64,000 bases of DNA from Camelus ferus (GCF_009834535.1 NC_045711.1:25110001-25174000); one strand, 5' to 3'. Counted from the stretch's first letter, positions 3,036-49,488 are shown. Numbers and translations: made by a program. Notes: generated from the letters alone by a model not told the origin.

Positions 3036-6000
3036 CTGAGGGACAGAGAGAAAAGAGAAAATTAGGCCACTGCCCAGGCTACTGGGCCTCCCCTGACTCT
3101 CTGATCCCTGCTAACTTGCATGCTCAGCAAGAGCAGGGGTTTTATTTTTGTCTCTGCTGCATCCCCAGTACTAGGAACTGTGGCTGGCACCTAGTAGGCA
3201 CTCAATAGGTATTTGTTGAATGAAAGGAAACACTAAACCAGCCCTGGTACTGGGCAGGAAGAGTCTTTGGGTCAGAGGGCATTAAAGGGCATGTTTCCTC
3301 TACCCTTGGTGGCAGGAAGCCAAGGACTCAAGGGGCAGTGGAGTCTGGGATATCTGCTCAGCCACGCCCTGGGCCCGTGATACCTCCTCCTGTATAGTTC
3401 TACCCCCTTGCTGGCTTGGAGAACTCCCTTGGAAACTGGGATTTCCAATGCCACACTCAGGAAGGTCTTAATGTAATAACTGTGTTGTCTGTCGACTGCC
3501 CTCCACCCCCACGGGCTTCACAAACCTTCCCCTTTACTCTGAATGTTACACACTCAGTGGCCCAACAAGTCCACTCGTGTGGGTCTCTGCTTCCATATCT
3601 GTTCATTTCCCTCTGGGCACAAATCACCATTATGATCACTAAGGTGCCTCTTTGCTTTAATCTCTTCAATCAAAAGGTAAGCCCTGAGGGGTGGGGACTA
3701 GTTCTCGATTCAGCCACACCCTCCCAGTGACTGGCACAGGTGTATGAATGGTTATGGCAGGTGTCCTTATCTGCATTTTGCAGATGACATGGCTCAGAGA
3801 AGGAAAATGACTTGCCCAGGTCCCACAGGCAGGAAGTGGGTGAACCAGGACGTTAATAACAGCAAACACATTCATAGCTTACCATGTGCCAGGCTCTCTA
3901 CTGAGCTCTTTAATATGACTTGTGATCATCACAACAATCCTATGAGGTAGATTCCATTATCATCCCCACTTTACTGATAAGACAACACAGAGGTATGGAG
4001 AGGGAGACAAAGGTCTTGGGTAAGTCTGGTAGAAAAAGCCTTCTTTTTAACTGTTCGTACCCTGAGTGCCAGTTGGGGAAAAGGGTGAACTCAGTCCCCT
4101 GGGATGCTTGAGAAAATCCGATTCAAGTCTCTAACCCTGGAGATGCTGAATGGGGCCGAAATCTGTCCAGACTGCTCCTATTTGCACCGCCCCTCCCCAC
4201 AAACCCTACCCACCCAGGCCACACCTGGCCGCCCTTTCTTCCCAGGGCCTCACCAGCCAGTGGAGGGGAGATGAGGATGGAGATGCTTTCCAGGATGGTG
4301 AAGAGGCCCAGGGCACTGGGGAACCGATCCATGGGGACAATGTCCATGAGGACCTGGAAGAGGAGGGCACCAATGCCACTCATGGACACGCTGTACACCA
4401 GGCAGTAGCCCACCAGCACCCGGAAGTCGGCCGACACTGTGCACACCAGGTTGGTGAGCCCGTTGAGCAGGGTTGCCAAGCTGAACAGGTACTTGCGGTG
4501 ACTGGCAAAGTCCTGCCGGCCCGCCACCAGCCCAGCCATGGGCCGCAGAAAGATGTTGCTGAAGCCGATGATGGAGATGAGCAGGGCCGCCCTGTGCTCA
4601 TCCACCCCATGCCGCGTGGCATAGGGCACCAGGAAGACATGCGGCAGTGGGAAACCCATGATCATCCACACGACTCCCAGCGTGTACACACGGTAGCCGG
4701 CGTTGTGAAGCAGGATGTCAAAGGCCAGGTGGCGCTGGATGGCCTGACCACAGGCTACCAGAAAGCCACGTGTGGGTCTCTTGGAAGGCGGAGGGAGGTC
4801 TTCTCTGATCTTGGGGGCCACACTGGTGGCCACGGGCCTCAGGATGGCCCCGGGCCTCAGGATGGCCCCGCAGACGCAGCCGTGGAGCAAAACCCCACCG
4901 AAGATGAGGAAGGTGCCCCTCCAGCCGAGGTCCTCCAGGAGGTAACGGGAGAGCAGTGGCCAGAGCATGATGCCCAGGGAGACGCCTGCTGAGGCCAGTG
5001 CATTGGCCAGCACCCGCCAGCGGGTGAAGTACAACCCCATCGCGGTGATGCTCGACTGAAAGCTGAAGCACATGCCCAGGCCTGTGGAAGGAGAGGCGAG
5101 ACCAGCTCCAGGGTGCAGCCAGCACGGGGGTCCTGGGGTCATGTCCCAGGTCTGTCTTCCTTCCATTCTGGCCCAGACCCCAGGTCCCCAGGGATTTAAG
5201 ATGGCATCAGCATGCTTCATCACCTCCCTAGAAGCATCTGTCCTCCTGAGGCTGCCAGGGGCACACCTGTTCCCTCGGCACAGCACTTGGGGATCCTCAA
5301 AAACCTAAATCAGGTTAAGTCTCTCCCCTGCCTAACACCTTCCAAAGATTTCCCATCACATCCAGGTAAAAAAGCCAAAGTATTTACTAAGCCCTGGAAG
5401 ACTCTGCATAGTCTGGCCCCTGGCCACCTCCTGGGTGCCATCTCAGGCCACTCTCCCTGTCACTCACCACAATCAAGCCACATCAGTTTCTCTTCCTCTG
5501 GACACTAAGCTGCCTGCTACCTTGGCATTGCAGTCAGTTGCCGTTCCCTCTGCCTGGAATATGCTTCCTGCAGACTCTCCTTTCTCGACTCAACCCAGAT
5601 GCCACCTCCACACCCACTCTGCACCTGCCCTGCACCCTGTCTGCTCAAAGGCACATCCCTCCAGCAATTCCCCTCTCCTGTAGTCCATTTTCTCCTCTTG
5701 ACTAGATCATTCTCCTTCATTGTTATTTCTCCCATTAAAACAAAACAAAACTTTGTCTGGACCCCAGTCTCTTCTGGGTCCCAGCCCATTTCTCTGCTCC
5801 TCTTCCATCAAAATATCTTGGAAATACTGTTTATCTTCACTGTCTCCAGTTTCCCTCCTCCTGTTCCTTTTTGAACCTATTTCAATCAGACTCATCCTCA
5901 CTGCTGTTCCTGAATTCCTCTTCTCCAGGCTGCCAACCTCCATGTTGTCAAAGCCAAAGACAGAGTCTGGTTCTCCTCGGTCTCATCCATCAGCAGCTTC

Positions 6001-14749: not shown

Positions 14750-15485
14750 TCATTGTTTAAAATATATTCAACTACTACAATGTTACAATAATCAAGACAG
14801 TGTGGTACTGGCGTTAAGTGTAGACACGTACATCAGTGAAATCGAATTGGGAATAAACCCTTACATTTATGGTCAATTGATTTTCCAGAAGGGTGCTGAG
14901 ACAATCAGGGTGGGAAGAACAGTCCTCTCAGTAAATAGAGCTGGAACAACTGGGCATCTGCATGTAAAAGAATGAGGTTGGACTTCTACCTCATATCATT
15001 TAGAAAAGAAAAAGGATCACAGATGTAAATTAAAAACAGAAACTATAAAGCTCTTAGAAGAAAATATAGGAGTAAATATTTATGATCTTGGATTAGGCAA
15101 TAGATTCTTAGACAACAGATCAAAAGCACAGGTGACAAAGGAAAAAACACATAAACTGGATGTCATCAAAATTAAAAACTTTCATGCGCTAAAAGACACC
15201 ATTAGGAAAGTGAAAAGATAACCCTCAAAATGGGAAAAATATATATGCAAATCGTAAATCTGATAAAGGACTTGTGTTGAGCATATATGAAGAACTCCCN
15301 NNNNNNNNNNNNNNNNNNNNNNNNNNNNNNNNNNNNNNNNNNNNNNNNNNNNNNNNNNNNNNNNNNNNNNNNNNNNNNNNNNNNNNNNNNNNNNNNNNNN
15401 NNNNNNNNNNNNNNNNNNNNNNNNNNNNNNNNAAATACAAATCAAACCCACAATGAGATACCACTTCCCAGCCACTAGGATGGCT
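14750..15485 (+). mobile_element. L1 ORF2 3'-region fragment (old L1M type) spanning an assembly gap
   Basis: Typical L1 motifs aatcaagacagtgtggtactggc, aaactataaagctcttagaagaaaatatagg, aaatcaaacccacaatgagataccac. Confidence 0.85.
15300..15432. other. Assembly gap (133 N)
   Basis: Run of N; both flanks are collinear L1 sequence. Confidence 0.99.
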
Positions 15486-24640: not shown

Positions 24641-24646
24641 TTTATT
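24641..24646 (-). terminator. TRIM80: TRIM80 polyadenylation signal AATAAA
   Basis: tttatt on + strand, 9 nt after the stop codon. Confidence 0.7.
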
Positions 24647-24655
24647 TGCCGCCGC

Positions 24656-25218
24656 CTACGCCTCCCCCTCCGGGTGCTGCTTTAGCGTGACCGAGGCGCC
24701 GCTGCTGACCATGACCGCGGGGTAGAGCGGCTCCAGGAAGGCGGCGAGGAAGCGGTAGATGAGGCTCACGCCGCCCGCCACGCCGTAGAAGGAGAGGCAG
24801 CCGGCGCCGCAGTCGAGCGCCACGCCGAGCGTGCGGTGGTAGCCGCCGTGCAGCACCGTCTGCGTGTTATTGTGCCACACGGAGAACTTGAGCGAGTCCC
24901 ACTCAAGGCACCACGAGTAGGGGTTGCGGCCCAGCAGGTAGACGATGTTGCGGCGTGGGCGGCCGCTGAGCGAAGGGCTGCGGCGGTAGGTGACGCCCAG
25001 GCACACCCACGAGTTGGACACCTCGGCCTCCCAGTAGTGGCAGCCCTCGGCCAGGCCGCGCGAGCACAGCACCTGCGGCCACTGCTTGAAGCCCCGGAAG
25101 GGGCCGCCCCCGGCGTAGGGCTCCAGCAGGATGCCCAGGTTCAGCACCGAGTGGGTCTCCTTGAACAGGAACAGCTCCTCGCTGGCCGTGGCGGGGTCGA
25201 AATTCAGGTTGCAGTAAC
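24656..25218 (-). CDS. TRIM80: TRIM80 exon 6: PRY/SPRY (B30.2) domain
   Basis: CYCNLNFDPATA...WPQVLC...HYWEAEV...LGRNPYSWCLEW...LGVALDCGAGCLSFY...LYPAV. Confidence 0.92.
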
Positions 25219-28200
25219 CTGGGCCGAGGCGGATGGGAAAGGGGTCCAAGGTCAGCGGCCCCAGGACAGAGCTGGAGGAGGGAGGTGCGAAGCCCCACGG
25301 CTTTGGCATAGAAGCTGCCAAATGCTTCCACTCCCAGCTCTCAGGAGTGGCTCCCCTGTCCCCTCTCCCCCTTTAAGTCTCCAACTCTGGCCCAGGATGT
25401 GTGTGTGTGATGACATAGTCTGGAAGAATGATTAGTTGAGTGCTGTCCAAAGGTCTGCCTTCCTAGAGAAGTTGAGAACCAAGCGTCCCCCTACCCGCCC
25501 CCCCCCCCCCCCAAACCCTAACATAAGCTTCCTTTTTGTTTGTTCAGGACACAAGATTCAGTGGGACTGAGGAAGAGTCAAGAGCTCCTAGAGGAGATTG
25601 CTCAGAAGGATTCATCAAAGGCAATACAACCTTGACCCTGGAGATCTCAGAGAAATCACTGACAATTTCTCAGAGAATCACTTGGCTCCTAGTCCAGCCT
25701 GGGAGAGGAGCTGGAGGAACATCACATGAAAAAGGAGGTTGTCTGAGGAAGAGATGGACAGGGTCATCCAAGCTGGCTTGGCTAAAGTCTGGGGGAGTCT
25801 GGCAGGCACCTAGTTGAAGGTACCACACCAGGGCCAGGAGAGCTGCAGAGCTGGCCTCTGGGCAGTAGGCAGGACCTTGCCTACCTACTGGGGTGGGACA
25901 GGACAGTCTCCTCCCCTTCCTATCAGGCCTTGGAGTCACAGGCCGAATCCTTCTGAGGCCTCCAGTCTAGAGTGGGAAGTCAGGGCCGGAGAGACCTGGC
26001 ATCTCTCTGGAGCCCTGACCTGAATGGAGGTATGACTGGGTAAGTCAAGGCACCCAAGAGCCCTGCTCCTTTCTTTCCCACCTCTGGGGCTGGACCCCAG
26101 TACTGAGGACTCACACTTGAGAAGTGTTTTCCTGTCCACAGCTGGGGGCAGCACTTCATACGAGTTCATCTTAATGCCTGGGGAAGATGGAGGGGCTTTG
26201 CTGAGGGTGCTTTCACAGCCCAGCATCCTTCCAGAGAGAGGCATGGGCTTCCAGGAGGCTGAGTCACCTGGGGAAGGTGCACACAGACAGGCAGGGCTCT
26301 CTACAAGTGCCGGGAATCCCAACCACTGCCCTGTAGGGCAGTCCCACCCCCAGAATGCAGGTGAGTCTCCAGTGGCCCCAGGTCAGCAGGTACTAACCCT
26401 TCAGGAGGAGCTGGTTGATGAAGCTGAGACCCATGTCCACCAGCCGAGTCCGGAGCTCCGCCAAGGTCTCTGGCAGCTGGAGGAAGCTCTGCTTCTCCTC
26501 ACAGTTGGTGCCCATCAGGGGTTCCATGCAGGCCGGGAAGTTCTTCAGCCTGGGGAGCTCCTGTATGCAAGGAGGGGCCAGCAGTACCACGTGTTAGCCA
26601 GGGCCCAAGCAGATGCCAGGGGCTCCTGCTTATGCCAGGGGCTTAGTGGTCCCCAGAACCATGGGTCAGGGGGAAAAGTTGTCCGTTTTCAAACCTGGAC
26701 ATCTCTCTCCCCTCCTCCTAGATTTTTGGATGCCTTAGATTAGGGATATCAAAGGCACAGCAGCCATTGTGGCCTAGTGCAATAAGCAAAGCGAAGTTTT
26801 AGAAAAGGATGGGAGGGGGGTTTCTTTTGAGCCTTTAATTGCTTGGTGAAAACCTTGCCAGATGCCTCCTTTTGTGCGTGGGGGACAAGGTGAGCAATAA
26901 CCCTAGAAATCTGCTCAGGGATGTGATGGCCACTGAAGAATGAAGATCTGGGCTGGGAGTTCCCAAGCACAGGGTTTGGGCAGCCCCAGGCTCCATGCAT
27001 AGAGAAAGCTCCTGCCATCTCCCTCCCTGACCCCTATTCCTCAGCCTGGTACGCTTTTGCATCTGGGGAAGGAAAATGGATTTCACACCTGGCTGTACAG
27101 ATTGTTCTGGTCTCACTTCCATCCCTGGCTTGGAGGAGTCTGGAGAAATTTAGGTTATTCAGATTCCCCAACTGTTATGGGGAAACAAAGGCAGGAAAGT
27201 TAGGGATAGGCTGAGTGCTGAGGTGGAGGAAGAAGCCACGGGTGCTGGTATACACTCAGGACAGATGACCTAAGATAAGCACAAACCCCAAACACTGATT
27301 ATTTTATCTAAGGTTTGGGCAGCTCGGGTGTGTCTGTGTCTGTGGCTGGAGGGGCAGTGGAGGCTGTGGTGGGCCTGGGGCAGAGGTGGCATGGGGTGGG
27401 GCCTTGCCTGCAGAAATTGCTGGTCGTTCCGATTGGCGAGCAGGGTGCGGAGCCAGATGCTGTCCCCCTCCAGCTTCAGGAGCCGGTTGTGGCTCTGCTG
27501 GATGGAGCTGCCCAGCTTCCCCAGGGCGGCTGCCTCTTCCTTCTCCACGAAATCCAAGACCTTCATCTGCAGCTGTTTGACCTCCTGGATGATCTCTGAG
27601 AAGCAGCTGTTCACCTCATCCCGAGTTGTCTGGATCAATTTCTGCGGGAGTTGGGGAGGATGGTGTGTAGAGCGGCATCTCTGAGCCCCACCCCAACACC
27701 CCACTATCACGGCACGGAGCCGTCCTAGGCATCCCGTCTCTGTCTGCCTGGCCCCACACCATCCAAGCCCTGAGAGCTCCCCTCAGCCTGATCCCCGGCG
27801 CTGGGGGAGCCTGGGCCAACCTTACCGAGAGAAAGGCCACCTGCCCCCGGTGCTTCTGGCTGTCGGAAGTGATGATCAGCATCTGGTTCTCCACATTGGC
27901 CTGGACCTTCCGAACCTCAACCTGGGGTGAGAGTAGGGGGTGGAGGAGGAGAGGGCCCCTGATTCAGAGAAGTGCCCTAGGAGAACCTCTTCTGTAAGCA
28001 GCCCTGTGTCAAAGCGCAGGAGAGACGCACTTCTTACATTCCTAAGAGGTTTGAATGGAAATGAGGATGAGCAGAGCGGAAGCCCAGGGTCCACCCCCTC
28101 TGCTCTTGGTCTCTCACTCCCTGAGTGGCCCTCTCTCCAGCCTTAGGAATCAGGCTTCACAGTGATGACCATAGGGTTTCAGATCATGAGATATGTCTAC

Positions 28201-29570
28201 GGGAGGGTTCAGTGGCTTGAGAGGCCTGGGAGGCAGTGGGGTGAGGAGGGGCCCATCAGACATGGAGCCCTTGGCTCTCTGGAGCCGTGCTGCCAGGCCC
28301 AGGCAGCCATGTGTCCCCAGGTCCTTCTGCATAAGCCTTTAGTCTCACCTGTTCCAGAGGTGGGAATTTTCTTGTTTTACAATATCTTACAGGACACTGC
28401 TATTCCAAGTGCCTGTCTATGAACTGTTGCTGACCCACAACAAAATAAGAAGCTCATGCCAGACTGTAAATTAACACATTGCTTCTTTTGTTGAGAAAGT
28501 CTTGCTGTGAAAAAAGTGTCAGCTGAAGGAAACTGTGATGAATTGGCTTACATTTCGGCATGATCTCCTTGTCTTGCCAGGGACCATCAACAGGGGTTAT
28601 CTGTTATTCAATATACATGATCAAAAGTCTAGAATATAAGTATTCCATCATAGAAAGCAATACAAAGACAGCAAACAAAATTTGAAAATGGAAGATAGGA
28701 GGGGATTTGCCCCACGTGTTTGTATTTTAATTATGTTCTCTTTTAGCCTTTCCTGATTCTATGCAAAAGAATTTAAACAGGATTCATGACACACATTTCT
28801 GGATCCTCATTCATTCAACTTGCCAGCACTTTTTCATCTCATGGTATGACCCTCGTGGCTATCCCTCTACTGGCTGCATCATTTTTCTCCAAGGAAAGGT
28901 GTGCCTGGGGCTTGGGAAAGACTTCCATTTGCCGTGTCAGATTCAGGACCACGAGCCCCGCCCCCCGCCCGGCGCACGGCCTCACCTCCCTGCGGGCGCG
29001 CTCCTGCTCCAGCGGGGCGGTGTCGTGGTCCTTGTGCTCCTCCAGCAGGCAGGCCCCGCACACGCAGCAGCCTTCCGTGCGGCAGTACAGCCGCCGCAGC
29101 CTGCGGTGCTTCCGGCACAGCCGGCTCTTGAGATCCCACACGGGCTCCAACAGCTGGTGGCCCCGGAACACCTGGTCCTCAAAGTGGCTGCGCAGGTGCT
29201 TCTCGCACAGGGAGGCCATGCACTGCAGGCATGACTTGACCGACTTGAGCTTCTGGGGGGAACAGAAGTCGCAAGGCACGTCCCTAGGCCCGGCCAGGTT
29301 CCGTGAGGACCCCTTGGCCTGGGTGAAGCAGGTCACCATCTCCTCCAGGATGACATTCTTGCAGAGGCGGGGCCTGGAGGGGAAGCTCTCTCGGCACTGG
29401 GGGCAATAGAGTGTCTCGCCCACAGTAGCCTGGTGGTCCCAGCAACCTTGGAGGCAGGTCATGCAGAAGTTGTGCCCGCAGGCAGTGGTGACCGGGTGGT
29501 GGAACACCTCCAGGCAGATGGGACAGAGGACTTGGTCCTCAAATGTGTGGAGACTGTTGTCATTATCCAT
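24656..29570 (-). CDS. TRIM80: TRIM E3 ligase (RING, B-box1, B-box2, coiled coil, PRY/SPRY), spliced CDS, 567 aa; TRIM80 orthologue
   Basis: join(29570-28986, 27921-27826, 27641-27408, 26560-26398, 26177-26115, 25218-24656) = 585+96+234+163+63+563 = 1704 nt, no internal stop, TAG at 24656-24658. The 96- and 234-nt phase-0 exons are typical of TRIM16/25/47/65-like genes. Symbol comes from recalled position between KCTD2 and SLC16A5. Confidence 0.88.
26115..26177 (-). CDS. TRIM80: TRIM80 exon 5 (63 nt)
   Basis: GIKMNSYEVLPPAVDRKTLLK. Acceptor cttccccAG|, donor T|GTGAGT; phase 1-1. Confidence 0.82.
26398..26560 (-). CDS. TRIM80: TRIM80 exon 4 (163 nt)
   Basis: ELPRLKNFP...INQLLLK+G. Acceptor ttgcatacAG|, donor |GTTAGT. 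Confidence 0.85.
27408..27641 (-). CDS. TRIM80: TRIM80 exon 3 (234 nt, coiled coil), GC donor
   Basis: KLIQTTRDEV...RNDQQFLQ. Acceptor ctcccgcAG|, donor CAG|GCAAGG. Confidence 0.85.
27826..27921 (-). CDS. TRIM80: TRIM80 exon 2 (96 nt, coiled coil)
   Basis: VEVRKVQANVENQMLIITSDSQKHRGQVAFLS. Acceptor caccccAG|, donor |GTAAGG. Confidence 0.88.
28986..29570 (-). CDS. TRIM80: TRIM80 exon 1: RING + B-box1 + B-box2
   Basis: CPICLEVF..CGHNFCMTC..CPQC; CDFC..SCLQCMASLCEKH..H; CRKH..YC..CVCGAC..H..H. Donor GAG|GTGAGG. Confidence 0.93.
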
Positions 29571-30789
29571 CGGGAACTGACCTTGGGGAGGTCTTGAGGG
29601 CTGGGCAGGGGGCTGCGGGGCTGGGATGTGGTCCTGGACTGGCCCTGGGAAGACAGCAAAGCCATGCTGGAGCCAAGGCAGGAGCAGAGGGGCCTTTGAG
29701 GAGTGGAGGGGCCGGTCCTTCTCTTGGAAGTGGCTCTCTGCTCATGGGGTACAGGGACTGTGCCATCAGTCAACCCACATGGGGGCAGAAATTGGGTATT
29801 GTGTTCTCCTTGTCCCAACCCTAATTCCTGGAACAAATCCTGGACAAGAAGGTGGGTGGGCAGAAAGAAGTCACATCATGACAGGGAAAGGAGCCACTTC
29901 CAATGCTCTTCAGGAGAAAGATCAAAGCATAAGTACTTACGTGAAACCCTCTGCATGTCAAGGAGAGCCAGAGGCTTGGCTGCCCTGTGGAGGGAGGAAA
30001 AAGAGCCCTTGGATACTCAGGTGCGGGGCCCTCACCCCTGGTTCCACCTCACCAGCTGCTGGGAGGATCCCCACCTGTCCGGTGTCCCCCCACCCCAGCT
30101 CTTTATGTCTCGAGGTCTGATGACCACCTCCTCACTTTTCCCTTTGGTTGCTGTTTTGTGGTCTCCCTATCAAGTTGGCCCCACTCCTCAAGACTGCCCA
30201 CAATGTTTGCTCCCTGATGTCACAATTCAAGCGTGACCAGCCCCAGCATCCTGCTTGTGACGTCAGCAGGACAAAAGATGTGCCACCGCACATGCTGCGG
30301 CGCTGATGGGTTCTGCCTCTTCCGGGACACTCTTTGCTCCAGAGCTCCCGGACTCAGCCCAGGAGGTGGAGTCACTGCTGCACCTGGGGTCCCTTGCAGT
30401 GGACTTGGGGGACTTGCGTTACCAACCAGAGAGGGAAAATGGCAATGAAGGGGCAGTGGGACCCTGGGCAACTTGTTTAATCTCTCAGGACCATGGTTCT
30501 TCTCCTGTGAATCAACAGGGATGTTGTAGAAGATGTTATTTCAAGGCCCCTGCTTGGTCTAAAGTTGAGTGATCCAAACATTATCTGATAGGAAACATTA
30601 TCTGATTCTAAAGATTATTGCTTCCCATTCTAGTTCTGATCCTCAGAAGGAAAAGGGATGAGTGAAGCCCTGATCGCTTCTTGTCAGTCTGTTTCCCTCC
30701 CATTCTTCCCCATCTGACAGGATACATGCTCTGAAACATTTGCAACGTATCACTCTTTTGCTCCAAAAAAGTAAGCTTGGCCCTACTTA

Positions 30790-33502: not shown

Positions 33503-35143
33503 AGAAAACTTTGCAACATTTTATATAATTTTATAACAATTTTGCAGTGTATAAAAAACTAAGGAATTAAACTGGCTTAACAGAGTAACACCAGTTCACC
33601 CCAGGGGAAAGCTTCACTGATGAAAACCTTTCAGCGTGGTATGATTCTCATTAGAAATTTAGCTCTGAGCTGCCACCTGGACTTTGAGCAGATTTAGTGA
33701 TACTCAAACGATCTGTTGTAAACGATGCCGTATGGAGCCGCCAGCAAGCCCCAACGGGAGAATCACCGTGCAGAACTCCAGGGTTTTGGAACAGACCCAT
33801 GACTCCTTTTACAGAGAACTCTTCCCCTTTTGAGAAACAGCCCCTGCTACCTAACCATGGGAAATCAAGTGACCATGTGGCCTGAGCTGCCCATCAGGAA
33901 CTGGGTGTTGTCTAACTCACCAAGCCAATTTGAGGAGTAATTAACCTAGCCCAGAAATAGATGTGACTGTTTTTCAGACCTGGGAACGATGGCTTTTTGC
34001 ACAGGGTCTCATGTTGTGGGGAGGCTAAGAGCATCTTTGTGTAAAGAGTAGCTGTAACTTGTTACATGGAGACAAAGTTGTTTTTACCATTGCATGATGT
34101 TCAAACGTGCATAGAAGCGCGCTTACGGATGCTGAGTGGCCACAGAGGCGGCAGAGCTGGTAATTATCTCCCAGCCCCGCCCCACCCTCCAGGCTGCCCT
34201 GTGCTGCTGGGGCTGGGAAGCTGCTGCAGGGAACTTGAGGGAGACTACAAGGCTAGAGGAAAAACAGAAGAGATGTGCTCCTTCCTGGTACCAGAGAAAC
34301 CACAGCTCCGCTTGGGCAGCAACGGCTGGTTCCAGCAGCTGGTTCGTTTGCAGTTTCCCACTGTCCCAGAACCAGCCTCATCGAGTTCCGAGACGGCAGT
34401 GTCTCCAATCCAAGGCCCCTCCTCTGAGCCTCTTCCCTTTGCTTCCCAGGTCTGGGAGCAGTAACTGTGTCCTGTGATCACTGCCGCTGTGACACCCGTG
34501 TCCCCTGGGCCCTTTCCTCTCTCCACCTGTTAGCAACTGCCATGCTCTCCGCCTCTCGTTGGAGCTGTTATAGCCCCATACCTTGTTCACTAACTTTGGG
34601 TGTACACGCCATCTCGTAAGCACCCTATGGGAGGGACGGCCTAACGCGTTCTGAGGATCCTACACCCCGCAGGATGCCTTAGTGTTCAGTACTTCACTTG
34701 TTGCTTACTTGACTCTCACCTCATATCCTCGTTATTTCTTACTTATCCTCTTCCCTGCAGAGAAAACGGGCACAGATTCTCTTCTAGGAGGATTTTTTCC
34801 CTTAAAAACCATTTTATACTCCTCTCCCCATCTCCTTCTGGCTCTCCTGTGGGAAGCCCATCTGTCCCCACCGTCTGTTCCCTGACACTCTCTGGGTCCT
34901 TTCAGATTCAGTAAAATGAAAGCCAGGAGGAAGAAGGCCCAGCACCCCCTCGGGCAGTCTCACAGCAGACGTGAGGACTTTGTAAGAAGCCCCACTAGAA
35001 AAATAGAAAAGGTGCAGTGAAATTCATCTCCTGAGAACAGCTGAAGAATCATCACTAGTTAAGTGACAGCAGAAACCAAGGAGGCTGCTGTACTAGAAAA
35101 CATACACCAAAGGTTTCAAGATTTCAGAATTTTGTTTCATCTC

Positions 35144-46900: not shown

Positions 46901-49165
46901 ACTCTGGAGGCTATTTCCAAAACTGAGTTCTCTTCCTTCTCATGAAGGGGGCTGAAGAGGGCCCAATGGGGCTCCTTCTAGACCCCCTCAGACCAGACTA
47001 GGTAAGTGGAGGCTCCCTACTTACTTTCATAAACCTTTGCTACATTTGCACATGAGCTGGATGAAAAGCTTAAAACTCAAATCTGTGAAACAGATTTTAA
47101 AGACTGGACCTGAACTTTGAAAATGCCCATGCAAGCACTGTTCTTACCTTCTTCTGCCAACTCCTTCGTGATGATGAGTTTCCCATGGCGGAGGTAGTTG
47201 AGGATAGGACCGAAGTAGGTGGGGTCCCTGTCAATCAGATAGGCCCCTGTCTCGTCCTGCCAACCAAACATAAGGGTATCACTGCTGAGCTTTCAGACTA
47301 AATCAGGGCAGCATTTCAAACTCTGTCACAATTCACCAGTGAGAGGGCAAGTTTTGCTAGATGTTTATAACAAACTATTGGCAAGAGGGCCACCTTTAGG
47401 TATCTTGTACTTTAAGATCATTTCAGGGAGGGTGACAAATGTACATCTAGGTGGTAACTTGAACTTCTAAAGTCTTTACTTGGACACAATTACCAACATT
47501 CTTCTTTTGGGATGTTCGTCTTAAAGAAACGGAGGAAGAAAATGCCATAGTTGCATGATCTAAATTTTTGCTTGAGATGGACATTCTGACTCCTCTATTG
47601 TCCCCAAATCACATTCCTAATTCTAAGAAAACCTCTGTTTAGTTGGCAATGCTCTTGAGCTCAGGGCCAACTTCAGTGGGAGTCTGCACTAGCAGCTGTA
47701 ATTCACACACCCCAGCTCTGTGCTCAAAGGAAGCTTGGCACTGCCAGGACTTGGCTCTGAGCAGTTTTAATCCTACTCATCTTTACAGTAAAGGGAACAA
47801 GAAGAAACTGGCTTCAACTGCAACAAGGAAGATTTAGGATAGATAAAAATAATTTCTTTTTAAGCAAGGGTTTTGGAAACTCTTTACAGTTAGGGCAGGA
47901 CAGGTTTATTACAGGAAAGGTAGATGAATAAATAGAATTGACCAATGTTTACCCACCCCCAATTCTGTTGCAAGGTAACAGCTGAGTGCTATACGGGATA
48001 TAATGTGGTGTAAGCAATGGTCAGTGCCTCTAAGCTGGAAACTAAAAGATGAATGTGTAAAGTTAAAAAAAAAAATTCAAGCAACAGCTCAAACTGGAAA
48101 TGGGTTAAGTGTCTTGTCACCTCTCAACTCTTTGGTTAGCAGCCATGCATCCTGCCCAAGGGCACTTTTGGGTCTTCATTTTCTCTGGTCTTAACGGGTC
48201 AGCTTAGGTTTGCACCGGCAAATGATAACCTATTTCCAAGGAATGTACTGGATCTCAAATACAAACCTAAAACAGTGACAGTTACCAGATATGAGCTCAG
48301 GGACCAGGAGCGCAGGAAAAGAAGTGTGATACCATGAGAAGCACTTCCTGCAGCTGTCAAAGCCGTCATCAGACCCAGGCTTTCACCCAACTTGGCAAAG
48401 CGGTCCGAGAAGAACTCTGAGAAAGCTACAAAGATGTCTTAGCTCACCCTGACCCAGTTCTGGATGCATCTGGCACAGGAGGTGAGGGGCTGACAAGGAG
48501 CCAGGGAAAAACTCATCCAGACCCGAGGGGCTGGGATGACAGACGCAGAGAGGAACACGAAGAAGAGGTGTGGAGTGCGTTTTCGAGGGTGAGGGTGGGC
48601 AAGGAAGCCGCTGAGAACGAAGGGCGGGGTCAGAGAGAGAGCCTTGGTGAGCCTGAGGATGGGGGAGAATAGCCCCCAGAGTTCGTCTGGAGGGGAAAGA
48701 GGAGGAGGAGGGGGCCCTAGCCCGCGGTGCCCGCCGGTGAGAAGCGTGTCGCAGGAATCTGGGGGAAAAGCCTAGGAGGAAGTAGGGGGTCCGAAGGCCG
48801 GGGGCGCGCCCAAGGGCGGGGCGCACCTTGTCTGAGTCCAGCTCCGGGTCCTCCTGGCAGCAGAGGCGGCAGAGAAAAGACTTGGGCTCCCGGCCTAGCG
48901 TCTGCCTGGTGGTCACGAAGTAGGTGCCGCCCACGTTCAGCCGGACCCAGCGGGCAGCCCCACCGCCCCCTGCCCGCTCGGGCGGTCCGGGACCCGGCTC
49001 CAGCGGCTGCGCGGTGGCGGTGGGCGGGCGGCTGTGCCCGCGGAGCGTGGGGCCAGCGGGGCGAGGGCTCGGGGGACCGCGGCCTGGGCCGCCCCCTTCG
49101 CCTAGCCCGCTCCCGCCACCCCCTCCCAGCCCCGCCATCGCCGGGTCCAGCTGCAGCTCCGCCAT
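37926..49165 (-). CDS. KCTD2: BTB/POZ domain protein KCTD2 (CUL3 adaptor family), spliced CDS, 263 aa
   Basis: join(49165-48827, 47256-47148, 45304-45213, 40841-40746, 38857-38732, 37955-37926) = 339+109+92+96+126+30 = 792 nt, all [14 protein letters not shown]...[18 protein letters not shown]...ILQERGSRM*. Confidence 0.97.
38732..38857 (-). CDS. KCTD2: KCTD2 exon 5
   Basis: [42 protein letters not shown]. Confidence 0.95.
40455..40606 (-). mobile_element. tRNA-Ala-derived camelid-type SINE in KCTD2 intron 4
   Basis: ctggggattgaacccaggacctcgtgtgtgctaagcacatgctctcccacttgagctataccctc on + strand. Confidence 0.9.
40746..40841 (-). CDS. KCTD2: KCTD2 exon 4
   Basis: [32 protein letters not shown]. 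Confidence 0.95.
41345..42055 (+). mobile_element. ERVL-class solo LTR, MER21-like, in KCTD2 intron 3
   Basis: tttgtccctggttcctggcacagagctcc, ggccaatgatataatcaa, ggggttcagggagcttcc and gtgggaacccttgaattt resemble the recalled MER21 consensus. Confidence 0.75.
44401..44606 (-). mobile_element. tRNA-Ala-derived camelid-type SINE with an extended 3' tail
   Basis: Standard head and tail plus 35 nt of extra sequence and a second poly(A); degenerate TSD at 44387-44400 and 44607-44620. Confidence 0.88.
45213..45304 (-). CDS. KCTD2: KCTD2 exon 3
   Basis: [31 protein letters not shown]. Confidence 0.95.
45790..46380 (+). mobile_element. L1MC/L1MD-type 3' end fragments
   Basis: ttaaatttctggaatttgataactatactgtggttacatgagagaatgcccttgttcttggaaaatatacactgaag. 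Confidence 0.7.
47148..47256 (-). CDS. KCTD2: KCTD2 exon 2
   Basis: [36 protein letters not shown]. Confidence 0.96.
48827..49165 (-). CDS. KCTD2: KCTD2 exon 1
   Basis: MAELQLDP...PELDSDK. Donor AAG|GTGCGC. Confidence 0.96.
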
Positions 49166-49434
49166 CTTGGGCCGCCGCCGCCGCCGCTGCCCGCGCGCCG
49201 CCGGGCCGGCCCATCTCTCGGCAGGGAGAGCCGGGCCAGCCCATCGGCGGGGGTGGGGCCTGGGGGGGAGGGACGGGAGCGCCCCCAACCAGAGCACGGG
49301 GACCCGCGCGGTGGAGGCGCTGCACCGCCTTCGGAGGAGGGATTTCCGGAACCAGTCCTTGTCTCTATTGGCTGACCTGCGAAACAGGGCCCGCCCCCTT
49401 GGCTTTGAGGTTGGCTGAGGGGAGGCTTTCCGGT

Positions 49435-49488
49435 GACCCACTTCCGTTCCTCACTGCTGTGGACTGTCTGCAGCCGGGGTCGGTGAAG
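49435..49488 (+). other. ATP5PD: ATP5PD non-coding exon 1 (start approximate)
   Basis: ...cagccggggtcggtgaag|GTGAGT; resembles the recalled human 5' UTR. Confidence 0.75.

Follow-up and report, generated by a model that had tools for sequence, protein, structure and literature searches.

Gene structure and predicted domains

The window analysed, i.e. the whole stretch of 64,000 nucleotides of Camelus ferus DNA, holds on its minus strand a six-exon gene which is very likely an intact and functional Camelus orthologue of TRIM80, on the TRIM25/16/47/65 branch. The gene appears to sit between KCTD2 (upstream) and SLC16A5 (MCT6, downstream), in the same orientation, the neighbours being named from family matches and from fused gene models. 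The minus strand holds a KCTD5/17-like BTB exon (48383-49441) and a monocarboxylate-transporter ORF (4123-5286); TRIM80 is fused to KCTD2 in gene models of C. ferus, Tupaia and Microtus, and to MCT6 in Alligator.

Splicing and translation of the six exons, all on the minus strand, gave 1704 nt, i.e. 567 codons followed by TAG, with no internal stop and with intron phases 0, 0, 0, 1 and 1, in agreement with the uninterrupted 567-aa ORF proposed in an earlier note on this DNA. The exon coding for the RING, B-box1 and B-box2 (28986..29644) starts at the acceptor at 29644; its coding part runs from 29570 to 28986 when counted from the ATG chosen in the earlier note (29570-29568), the counterpart of the reptile start. 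It is followed by two coiled-coil exons, one of 96 nt and phase 0 (27826..27921), with its size kept from lizard to mammals, and one of 234 nt (27408..27641). Next come two linker exons, placed by the gene model and by exon comparison, of 163 nt (26398..26560, phase 1 at its end) and 63 nt (26115..26177, phase 1 at both ends), and finally the PRY/SPRY exon (24656..25218), which ends with the TAG stop at 24658-24656 and has a GC content of 69%, a GC3 of 0.96 and a CpG observed/expected ratio of 0.89.

Intron 3, which follows the 234-nt exon, is of the GC-AG type, its donor in the camel window being GC (cag/gcaagg) and not GT; this donor, overlooked in the earlier six-exon model, is common to six placentals (Cervus, Capricornis, Mus, Lemur, Eptesicus and Elephas). 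As for the AATAAA reported after the stop, the signal was found 10 nt downstream (24641..24646, minus strand) and, together with the following AGCTGGAC, is kept in all eight placental orthologues examined. The 3' UTR of TRIM80 is very short.

At the protein level, the predicted product is a class-IV TRIM (RBCC-B30.2), with RING, B-box1, B-box2, coiled coil and PRY/SPRY. All eight zinc ligands of the C3HC4 RING are present (C16, C19, C31, H33, C36, C39, C56 and C59), and the domain matches Pfam zf-RING_UBOX (E 1.3e-11). The zinc-binding patterns of B-box1 (C100 to H138) and B-box2 (C152 to H182) are also complete; Pfam matches the latter at 1.7e-8 and the former weakly (E 0.0037), B-box1 aligning in addition with the corresponding domains of TRIM25 and MID1 (2ffw, 1e-4). 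Pfam then recognises TRIM_CC (E 1.6e-11), assigned to the 234-nt coiled-coil exon, and a C-terminal SPRY (1.3e-13) and PRY (1.5e-4). The zinc-ligand check and the Pfam matches thus confirm that the RING and both B-boxes keep their Cys/His patterns and that the PRY-SPRY is complete. Ile18, which we take to be the E2-contact residue, and the CPQCR motif with Arg60, presumably the linchpin as in TRIM25 structures, are kept as in the TRIM25 RING. The AlphaFold2 model of the SPRY (pTM 0.73) is a beta-sandwich whose top Foldseek matches are TRIM25, TRIM16 and TRIM65, its PRY portion being of low confidence (pLDDT about 50).

Upstream exons and start codon

A further coding exon of 44 nt, absent from the earlier model, was located upstream (29941..29984, minus strand). 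Bounded by the splice sites ccacag/GG and CAC/gtaagt, it contains an in-frame ATG (29956-29954, context GACATGC), the probable placental start codon, and joins the acceptor at 29644 to give a 597-aa ORF. The proteins of Bactrian camel and alpaca match this region at 94-100%, and both exon and ATG are kept in Cervus, Capricornis, Mus, mink, Eptesicus and elephant. This ATG is the exact starting point of more than ten gene models of placentals, and many placental models open with MQ(R/K)VSRP. The camel product most likely comprises 597 aa from the upstream ATG; the exons and phases proposed earlier, and the open 567-aa frame, stand, whereas the 567 aa are probably just the conserved core of the longer protein.

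The alternative that the camel protein is the 567-aa form, initiated at ATG 29570 and preceded by exons of purely 5' UTR, is possible, if rather doubtful. The Met at 29570 aligns with the starts of reptile, turtle and caecilian proteins, has a G at +4 and opens the dromedary and elephant models. AUG 29956 is, however, the first AUG on transcripts with the 44-nt exon, is in frame, has a G at -3 and is conserved in most placentals. Moreover, at least nine species (Eptesicus, Rousettus, Nycticebus, manatee, Microtus, Jaculus, Dipodomys, Ictidomys and Cebus) have no Met at the downstream position and must therefore initiate at the upstream one.

Homology to a 76-80-nt exon in the Cervus, Capricornis, Lemur and Mus models suggests that camel TRIM80 probably has one further non-coding 5' exon, a putative segment of ca. 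78 nt (30136..30213, minus strand; donor AAAA/gtgagg; 5' end tentative) within which no ATG was found. Next to it, a non-coding block (30214..30270, minus strand) is conserved from elephant to mouse among nine aligned placental sequences and may serve as core promoter or as a regulatory element. A motif scan found in it a pair of CRE-like motifs, TGACGTCA at 30265-30258 and TGACATCA from 30222 on; in some of the gene models from ruminants and lemur, the latter overlaps a splice acceptor.

Orthology, constraint and lineage losses

Identity to the camel protein is 99.3-99.4% for Camelus proteins, 92% for Cervus, 89% for the TRIM80 of Rousettus (bat), 82% for Mus caroli, 80.6% for the rat 'tripartite motif protein 80', 59% for lizard and 49% for caecilian. 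The TRIM80s of rat, mouse, bat and jerboa, with 80-89% identity over their full length, represent the same gene as that of the camel. The named TRIM80s share with it the domain order, the exon sizes and phases, the GC-AG intron, the upstream start exon, the poly(A) signal and both neighbours, with no substantive difference. From lizard to mammals, nine species show exons of about 585/96/234/163/63/557 nt and the phases 0, 0, 0, 1 and 1. Named proteins, synteny and exon structure all bear out the TRIM80 identity given in the earlier note. Orthologues extend from caecilian to placentals, lizard and turtle included, and the E-values of the family search fall from 1e-113 to 1e-66 outside the TRIM80 group. 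In lizard, an intron-less Logan contig of 1914 nt (run SRR6291263) encodes the full 572-aa orthologue, which is therefore transcribed and spliced as modelled. RNA runs in which intron 1 is contained no less completely than the locus as a whole are uninformative on the mature mRNA.

Concerning the wider family, the TRIM16/25/47/65-clade layout described earlier is also recovered, the closest solved structures being TRIM25 for the RING and B-boxes (1e-33, with CPQCR aligned) and TRIM65, TRIM25 and TRIM16 for the SPRY (2e-25 to 1e-22). The reading of the camel gene as TRIM25 itself, the GenBank name of the dromedary record, or as a recent TRIM25, TRIM47 or TRIM65 duplicate, is given next to no credence. 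Automatic database names do include 'TRIM25', 'TRIM25-like', 'TRIM47-like', 'TRIM65-like' and 'TRIM16-like', and TRIM25 shares with TRIM80 the RING-B-box1-B-box2 module, the helices flanking the RING, the SPRY fold and the domain order. TRIM25 identity was nevertheless rejected, the N-terminal match being paralogue-level (about 45% identity, read by eye from the alignment) and the SPRY identity about 32%. TRIM80 also forms an orthologous group of its own, separate from TRIM25 across tetrapods and reaching back to amphibians, at a different genomic location, with fixed synteny beside KCTD2 and SLC16A5. TRIM25 proper has a lysine-rich RNA-binding motif in its linker, whereas the TRIM80 linker is shorter (76 aa in camel) and holds six scattered Lys without any cluster. 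As for fish, finTRIM, TRIM16-like and TRIM25-like proteins are the next-best N-terminal matches at 44-48% (coelacanth FinTRIM 66; gar, sturgeon and sharks), these expansions being multi-copy and lineage-specific, while TRIM80 is single-copy, syntenic and slowly evolving.

Strong purifying selection acts on all domains of TRIM80. Across nine mammals, omega is 0.094, omega = 1 being rejected (2ΔlnL = 905), which contradicts the dN/dS near 1 that the earlier note had named as the result that would tell against a working gene. By domain, the nine-mammal values are 0.08 for the RING/B-box region, 0.13 for the coiled coil and 0.07 for the SPRY. NG86 pairwise dN/dS between the window and ruminants is 0.16 for Cervus and 0.20 for Capricornis.

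The distribution is patchy, as the earlier note had suggested: no catarrhine protein was present among 115 family matches, frameshifts and deletions break the narwhal copy, that of the marmoset is truncated, and that of the tarsier is without one B-box2 Cys. With such repeated losses elsewhere, the gene is therefore dispensable in some mammals. These losses give some grounds for regarding the camel copy as an intact ORF in a silent or newly dead gene, i.e. an incipient unitary pseudogene as in catarrhines and cetaceans. This seems very unlikely: all 567 codons are open in the window, as they are in the dromedary and alpaca models, and no zinc ligand or splice site is damaged, the upstream ATG and poly(A) signal being intact as well. 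The camel-vs-ruminant dN/dS values given above weigh in the same direction. Frameshift, premature stop, lost splice site and lost start were all looked for in the window copy, and none was found.

Possible function and SPRY partners

By analogy with its relatives, the TRIM80 RING would dimerise and recruit a charged E2, the coiled coil would form an antiparallel dimer presenting two SPRY domains, and the SPRY may use its variable loops VL1 and VL3 to engage a cellular partner that is conserved and probably multimeric. Two variable patches, aa 415-423 and 459-472, coincide with these loops and are the sole poorly conserved parts of the TRIM80 SPRY.

The SPRY clade of TRIM80 also includes the MDA5 ligase TRIM65 and the RIG-I ligase RIPLET/RNF135, with VL1 and VL3 equivalently placed; by sequence, exon 6 matches the SPRY of TRIM65 best (2e-25). 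TRIM80 and TRIM65 share about 33-38% identity in this domain, with indels in the loops. The loops compared (VL1, VL3 and VL6) occupy positions equivalent to those of TRIM65 and differ from them in length and sequence. The number of B-boxes also varies: one in TRIM65, none in RIPLET and two in TRIM80.

The earlier note had proposed an innate-immune ligase, which would bind the filament of a RIG-I-like receptor or another RNA helicase through its SPRY and ubiquitinate it, like TRIM65, RIPLET and TRIM14. This role, drawn from family analogy, appears quite unlikely. In its favour, the TRIM80 SPRY has its nearest counterparts in TRIM65, TRIM25, TRIM16 and TRIM14, a clade with helicase-pairing members (Kato et al.), the panel of these authors was human-only and hence did not include TRIM80, and the variable patches are the very loops used by TRIM65 and RIPLET. 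Kato et al. reported, however, that TRIM65, RIPLET and TRIM14 bound MDA5, RIG-I and LGP2, respectively, and that no others did; each receptor thus already has a partner. In the same study, the SPRY domains of TRIM25, TRIM47 and TRIM16 bound no RIG-I-like receptor, TRIM25 not even RIG-I, and clade membership is therefore no predictor of receptor binding. The limited identity to TRIM65 and the loop indels count against the proposal as well, as does the SPRY omega, which is not an arms-race pattern. Furthermore, in the 2 kb upstream the motif scan found a single loose ISRE core and not one strict ISRE, and the few notices of rodent Trim80 concern toxicant-stressed liver and beta cells, not interferon settings. 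The germ-cell role put forward as an alternative in the earlier note found no support in the analysis.

Another reading, speculative and unlikely as a whole, would make TRIM80 a SPRY ligase of the helicase-pairing clade, single-copy and tetrapod-wide yet absent from humans, whose SPRY partner would be conserved and multimeric, possibly a helicase other than the RIG-I-like ones, and whose expression would be induced by stress through the tandem CRE/ATF-like motifs and not by interferon. If this stress-induced, helicase-pairing reading were true, the independent catarrhine and cetacean losses would mark a pathway rewired in those lineages.

The gene, singled out in the earlier note as the best candidate for unexplored biology, is already in public annotation for many animals and for that reason ordinary as a discovery. 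TRIM80 is nonetheless real, intact and strongly constrained, and in the literature searched seven papers name it, each of them in passing and giving no function for any orthologue; this neglect is likely due to there being no intact catarrhine, hence human, protein on record. Within TRIM biology, TRIM80 is a clean candidate for knockout or interactome work in mouse or rat. The results are also of use to annotation, the start codon probably lying in the 44-nt exon. Camelid records misname the gene as TRIM25 or TRIM25-like, the Bactrian camel is represented by a LOW QUALITY model lacking part of the SPRY, and in the dromedary model, avoidance of the conserved GC donor has produced a spurious insert of 38 aa. 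The name TRIM80P, given in the earlier note to the syntenic human locus, occurs in one paper of the literature searched, where it is applied to a chromosome-11 locus, TRIM53B.

Gene model, splice sites and translation start

Once their splice sites had been located, the six exons on the minus strand (29570-28986, 27921-27826, 27641-27408, 26560-26398, 26177-26115 and 25218-24656), counted from the ATG at 29570, were joined into 1704 nt, or 567 codons followed by TAG, free of internal stops and with phases 0, 0, 0, 1 and 1. The cysteine/histidine patterns of the RING, B-box1 and B-box2 are all complete, and separate Pfam searches of each exon matched RING, B-box, TRIM_CC, PRY and SPRY. An AATAAA lies 10 nt past the stop codon, and GC3 lies between 0.85 and 0.96 in all exons but the 63-nt one (0.62), vs. 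a GC content of 0.48-0.66 in the introns. On these grounds, the earlier note's description, made from sequence alone, of an uninterrupted six-exon ORF with an intact RING, two B-boxes, a complete PRY-SPRY and an AATAAA after the stop is correct, far beyond chance.

The SPRY exon (24656-25218, minus strand) is CpG-island-like, with 69% GC, a CpG observed/expected ratio of 0.89 and a GC3 of 0.96, and it has diverged at synonymous sites about half as much as the other exons. Mouse Trim80 has been listed, in one paper, among regions of allele-specific methylation. At 15300-15432, 133 consecutive N mark either an assembly gap or a masked stretch.

The donor of intron 3 is GC (cag/gcaagg), not GT. 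When the exon structures of nine orthologous loci were rebuilt, each from its own protein, this GC donor proved common to Cervus, Capricornis, Mus caroli, Lemur, Eptesicus and Elephas, while GT is found at this position in the mink and lizard models. The GenBank model of the dromedary locus (L001, from CM016642.2; positions 3001-7909 of L001) skips the GC donor for a GT 114 nt downstream and thereby gains 38 residues seen in no other species, an insert almost certainly due to faulty annotation. The name of this model, 'E3 ubiquitin/ISG15 ligase TRIM25', also looks like an annotation error.

Concerning the start of the protein, an N-terminal extension is present in the alpaca, Bactrian camel, pig, yak and rat proteins, and its first part maps to 30016-29939. 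A 44-nt upstream coding exon was delimited at 29984-29941 (minus strand; acceptor ccacag/GG, donor CAC/gtaagt), which joins the acceptor at 29644. The only ATG of this stretch, at 29956, lies in frame and lengthens the ORF by 30 residues, to 597 aa. Both the exon and its ATG align throughout the placentals compared (only the lemur has ACG instead), and more than ten placental models begin exactly at this methionine. The downstream methionine (ATG at 29570), which the earlier note had taken as the start, is that of reptiles, and it is missing in Eptesicus, Rousettus, Nycticebus, manatee, Microtus, Jaculus, Dipodomys, Ictidomys and Cebus. Given the conserved exon and ATG, the placental models starting there and the absence of the downstream methionine in nine taxa, translation of camel TRIM80 most likely begins at 29956; the 567-aa ORF originally described would be retained, with the start moved to a conserved in-frame ATG upstream.

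Orthology, selection and lineage-specific losses

An exhaustive profile-free search with exon 1 led to a full-length lizard relative, from which two family searches were seeded; these recovered one coherent family, found in squamates, turtles, tuatara, crocodilians, palaeognath birds (partial models), a caecilian, monotremes, koala and most placental orders. The rat member is called 'tripartite motif protein 80' and those of Rousettus, Myotis and Jaculus 'TRIM80', the others bearing automatic TRIM25-, TRIM47-, TRIM65- or TRIM16-like names. Identity of the window protein to its orthologues falls from 99.3-99.4% (the three Camelus records) through 98.8% (alpaca), 92% (red deer) and 81% (rat Trim80) to 59% in Sceloporus and 49% in Microcaecilia. 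The name TRIM80 proposed beforehand is mostly correct, and the gene, already annotated in camelids and many other species, is not new. TRIM25 was considered as an alternative identity and ruled out, since its N-terminus is no closer to human TRIM25 than a paralogue would be (E 1e-33; ca. 45% identity in an alignment read by eye). The SPRY of TRIM80 is about 32-33% identical to those of TRIM25 and TRIM65.

Family matches placed a KCTD5/17-like BTB first exon, probably of KCTD2, at 48383-49441 and the large exon of a monocarboxylate-transporter ORF, probably SLC16A5/MCT6, at 4123-5286, both on the same (minus) strand as TRIM80. Public models mis-fuse KCTD2 with TRIM80 in Camelus ferus, Tupaia and Microtus, and MCT6 with TRIM80 in Alligator, which gives the gene order KCTD2, TRIM80, SLC16A5. 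One paper puts mouse Trim80 at chr11:115.44 Mb.

The window and eight mammals were put into a codon alignment, which was analysed with IQ-TREE (GY+F3X4); rat Trim80 (no DNA record for the protein) and koala (a LOW QUALITY model that would join only with a frameshift) were left out of the dN/dS set. A dN/dS near 1, which the earlier note had named as an argument against its own reading, was not observed: omega is 0.094 overall, 0.08 in the RING and B-boxes, 0.13 in the coiled coil and linker and 0.07 in PRY/SPRY, and fixing it at 1 costs 905 in 2ΔlnL. Nei-Gojobori values of the window are 0.16 vs. Cervus and 0.20 vs. Capricornis. In a set of 44 mammalian orthologues, identity to camel is 82-87% in every domain and the sole variable patches are residues 415-423 and 459-472, which an AlphaFold2 model of the SPRY (pLDDT 69.9, pTM 0.73) places in the two long loops matching VL1 and VL3, the variable loops used by TRIM65 and RIPLET for receptor contact.

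All 115 family members with E < 1e-60 were listed. The primates among them are lemur, loris, tarsier, capuchin, squirrel monkey and marmoset; no catarrhine protein was found, as would be expected, on this indirect evidence, if the human copy is a pseudogene. In the literature searched, the name 'TRIM80P', which the earlier note gives to the syntenic human locus, occurs in a single paper, where it is another name for TRIM53B on chromosome 11. In marmoset (Callithrix, two models, P0023 and P0257), exon 5 and the N-terminal portion of the RING are missing, one B-box2 histidine is lost and the end is out of frame, and tarsier (Carlito, P0228) has lost one B-box2 cysteine; these defects suggest that TRIM80 has also decayed in some non-catarrhine primates. 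As for Cetacea, the sole entry is a narwhal model (Monodon monoceros, P0259), which reads through frameshifts and is missing RING and B-box1 cysteines. Since no other cetacean protein was found among the 115 members, TRIM80 may be a pseudogene in this group. With the catarrhines absent, the narwhal and marmoset copies broken and the tarsier B-box2 altered, 'lineage-patchy', as the gene had been called, is a fair description.

Predicted function, upstream region and expression

By homology with other class-IV TRIMs, the RING would dimerise and recruit an E2; an antiparallel coiled coil would likewise make TRIM80 a dimer, whose two SPRY domains would recognise a partner. The CPQCR motif and the first-loop Ile of camel TRIM80 align with those of TRIM25, and would play the roles that they have in TRIM25 RING structures.

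A conserved non-coding block was found by motif scan and alignment at 30270-30214 (minus strand), next to a putative non-coding exon of about 78 nt placed at 30213-30136 (minus strand) by alignment of the upstream sequence. Kept from elephant to mouse, the block holds two CRE/ATF-like motifs 44 nt apart, TGACGTCA and TGACATCA; most other species have TGACATCA where camel has TGACGTCA. The ruminant and lemur gene models have a splice acceptor that overlaps the second of these motifs. The motif scan of the 2 kb upstream of TRIM80 revealed one perfect CRE and one loose palindromic TTCNNNGAA site at about 31619; NF-kB, ARE and CARE motifs were absent, as were a strict ISRE and a GAS site of the strict form TTCCNGGAA.

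Among the human SPRY proteins of the panel of Kato et al., which does not therefore include TRIM80, only TRIM65 (MDA5), RIPLET (RIG-I) and TRIM14 (LGP2) bound a receptor; the SPRY domains of TRIM25, TRIM47 and TRIM16, which are related to that of TRIM80, bound no RIG-I-like receptor, TRIM25 showing no binding to RIG-I. With these results and no strict ISRE in the 2 kb upstream, the link to RIG-I-like receptors proposed in the earlier note found no support. In rat, Trim80 is expressed in beta cells and is induced, along with Hmox1, Maff, Adm2 and Trib3, in liver injured by toxicants; together with the two CRE/ATF-like sites, this hints at stress regulation, as a lead only. The literature searched contains seven passing mentions of TRIM80 and no functional study.

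Two further observations concern the 5' region. Cervus and Capricornis carry a ruminant-specific insertion of about 640 nt, probably a transposable element, just before the conserved block and upstream of a 76-nt exon. The 'LOW QUALITY' Bactrian camel model begins with a short far-upstream exon at 34439-34612 (minus strand) and uses another acceptor, at 30016; this exon may be read-through from the KCTD2-like gene and not a true first exon.

In the RNA runs, word content covered 0.13-1.00 of intron 1 vs. 0.16-0.78 of the whole locus. Four runs labelled 'reproductive system metagenome' (X1-X4) contained 55-78% of the whole-locus words and 68-100% of those of intron 1, a signal that could be unspliced RNA or DNA carry-over. 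These shares were dropped as expression evidence because intron 1 is about as full as the locus, so that mature mRNA is inseparable from pre-mRNA or DNA carry-over. No mammalian TRIM80 mRNA contig was found in Logan, only a lizard cDNA contig: the full lizard orthologue is encoded by an intron-less contig of 1914 nt from run SRR6291263, and the orthologue is thus transcribed and spliced in a squamate.
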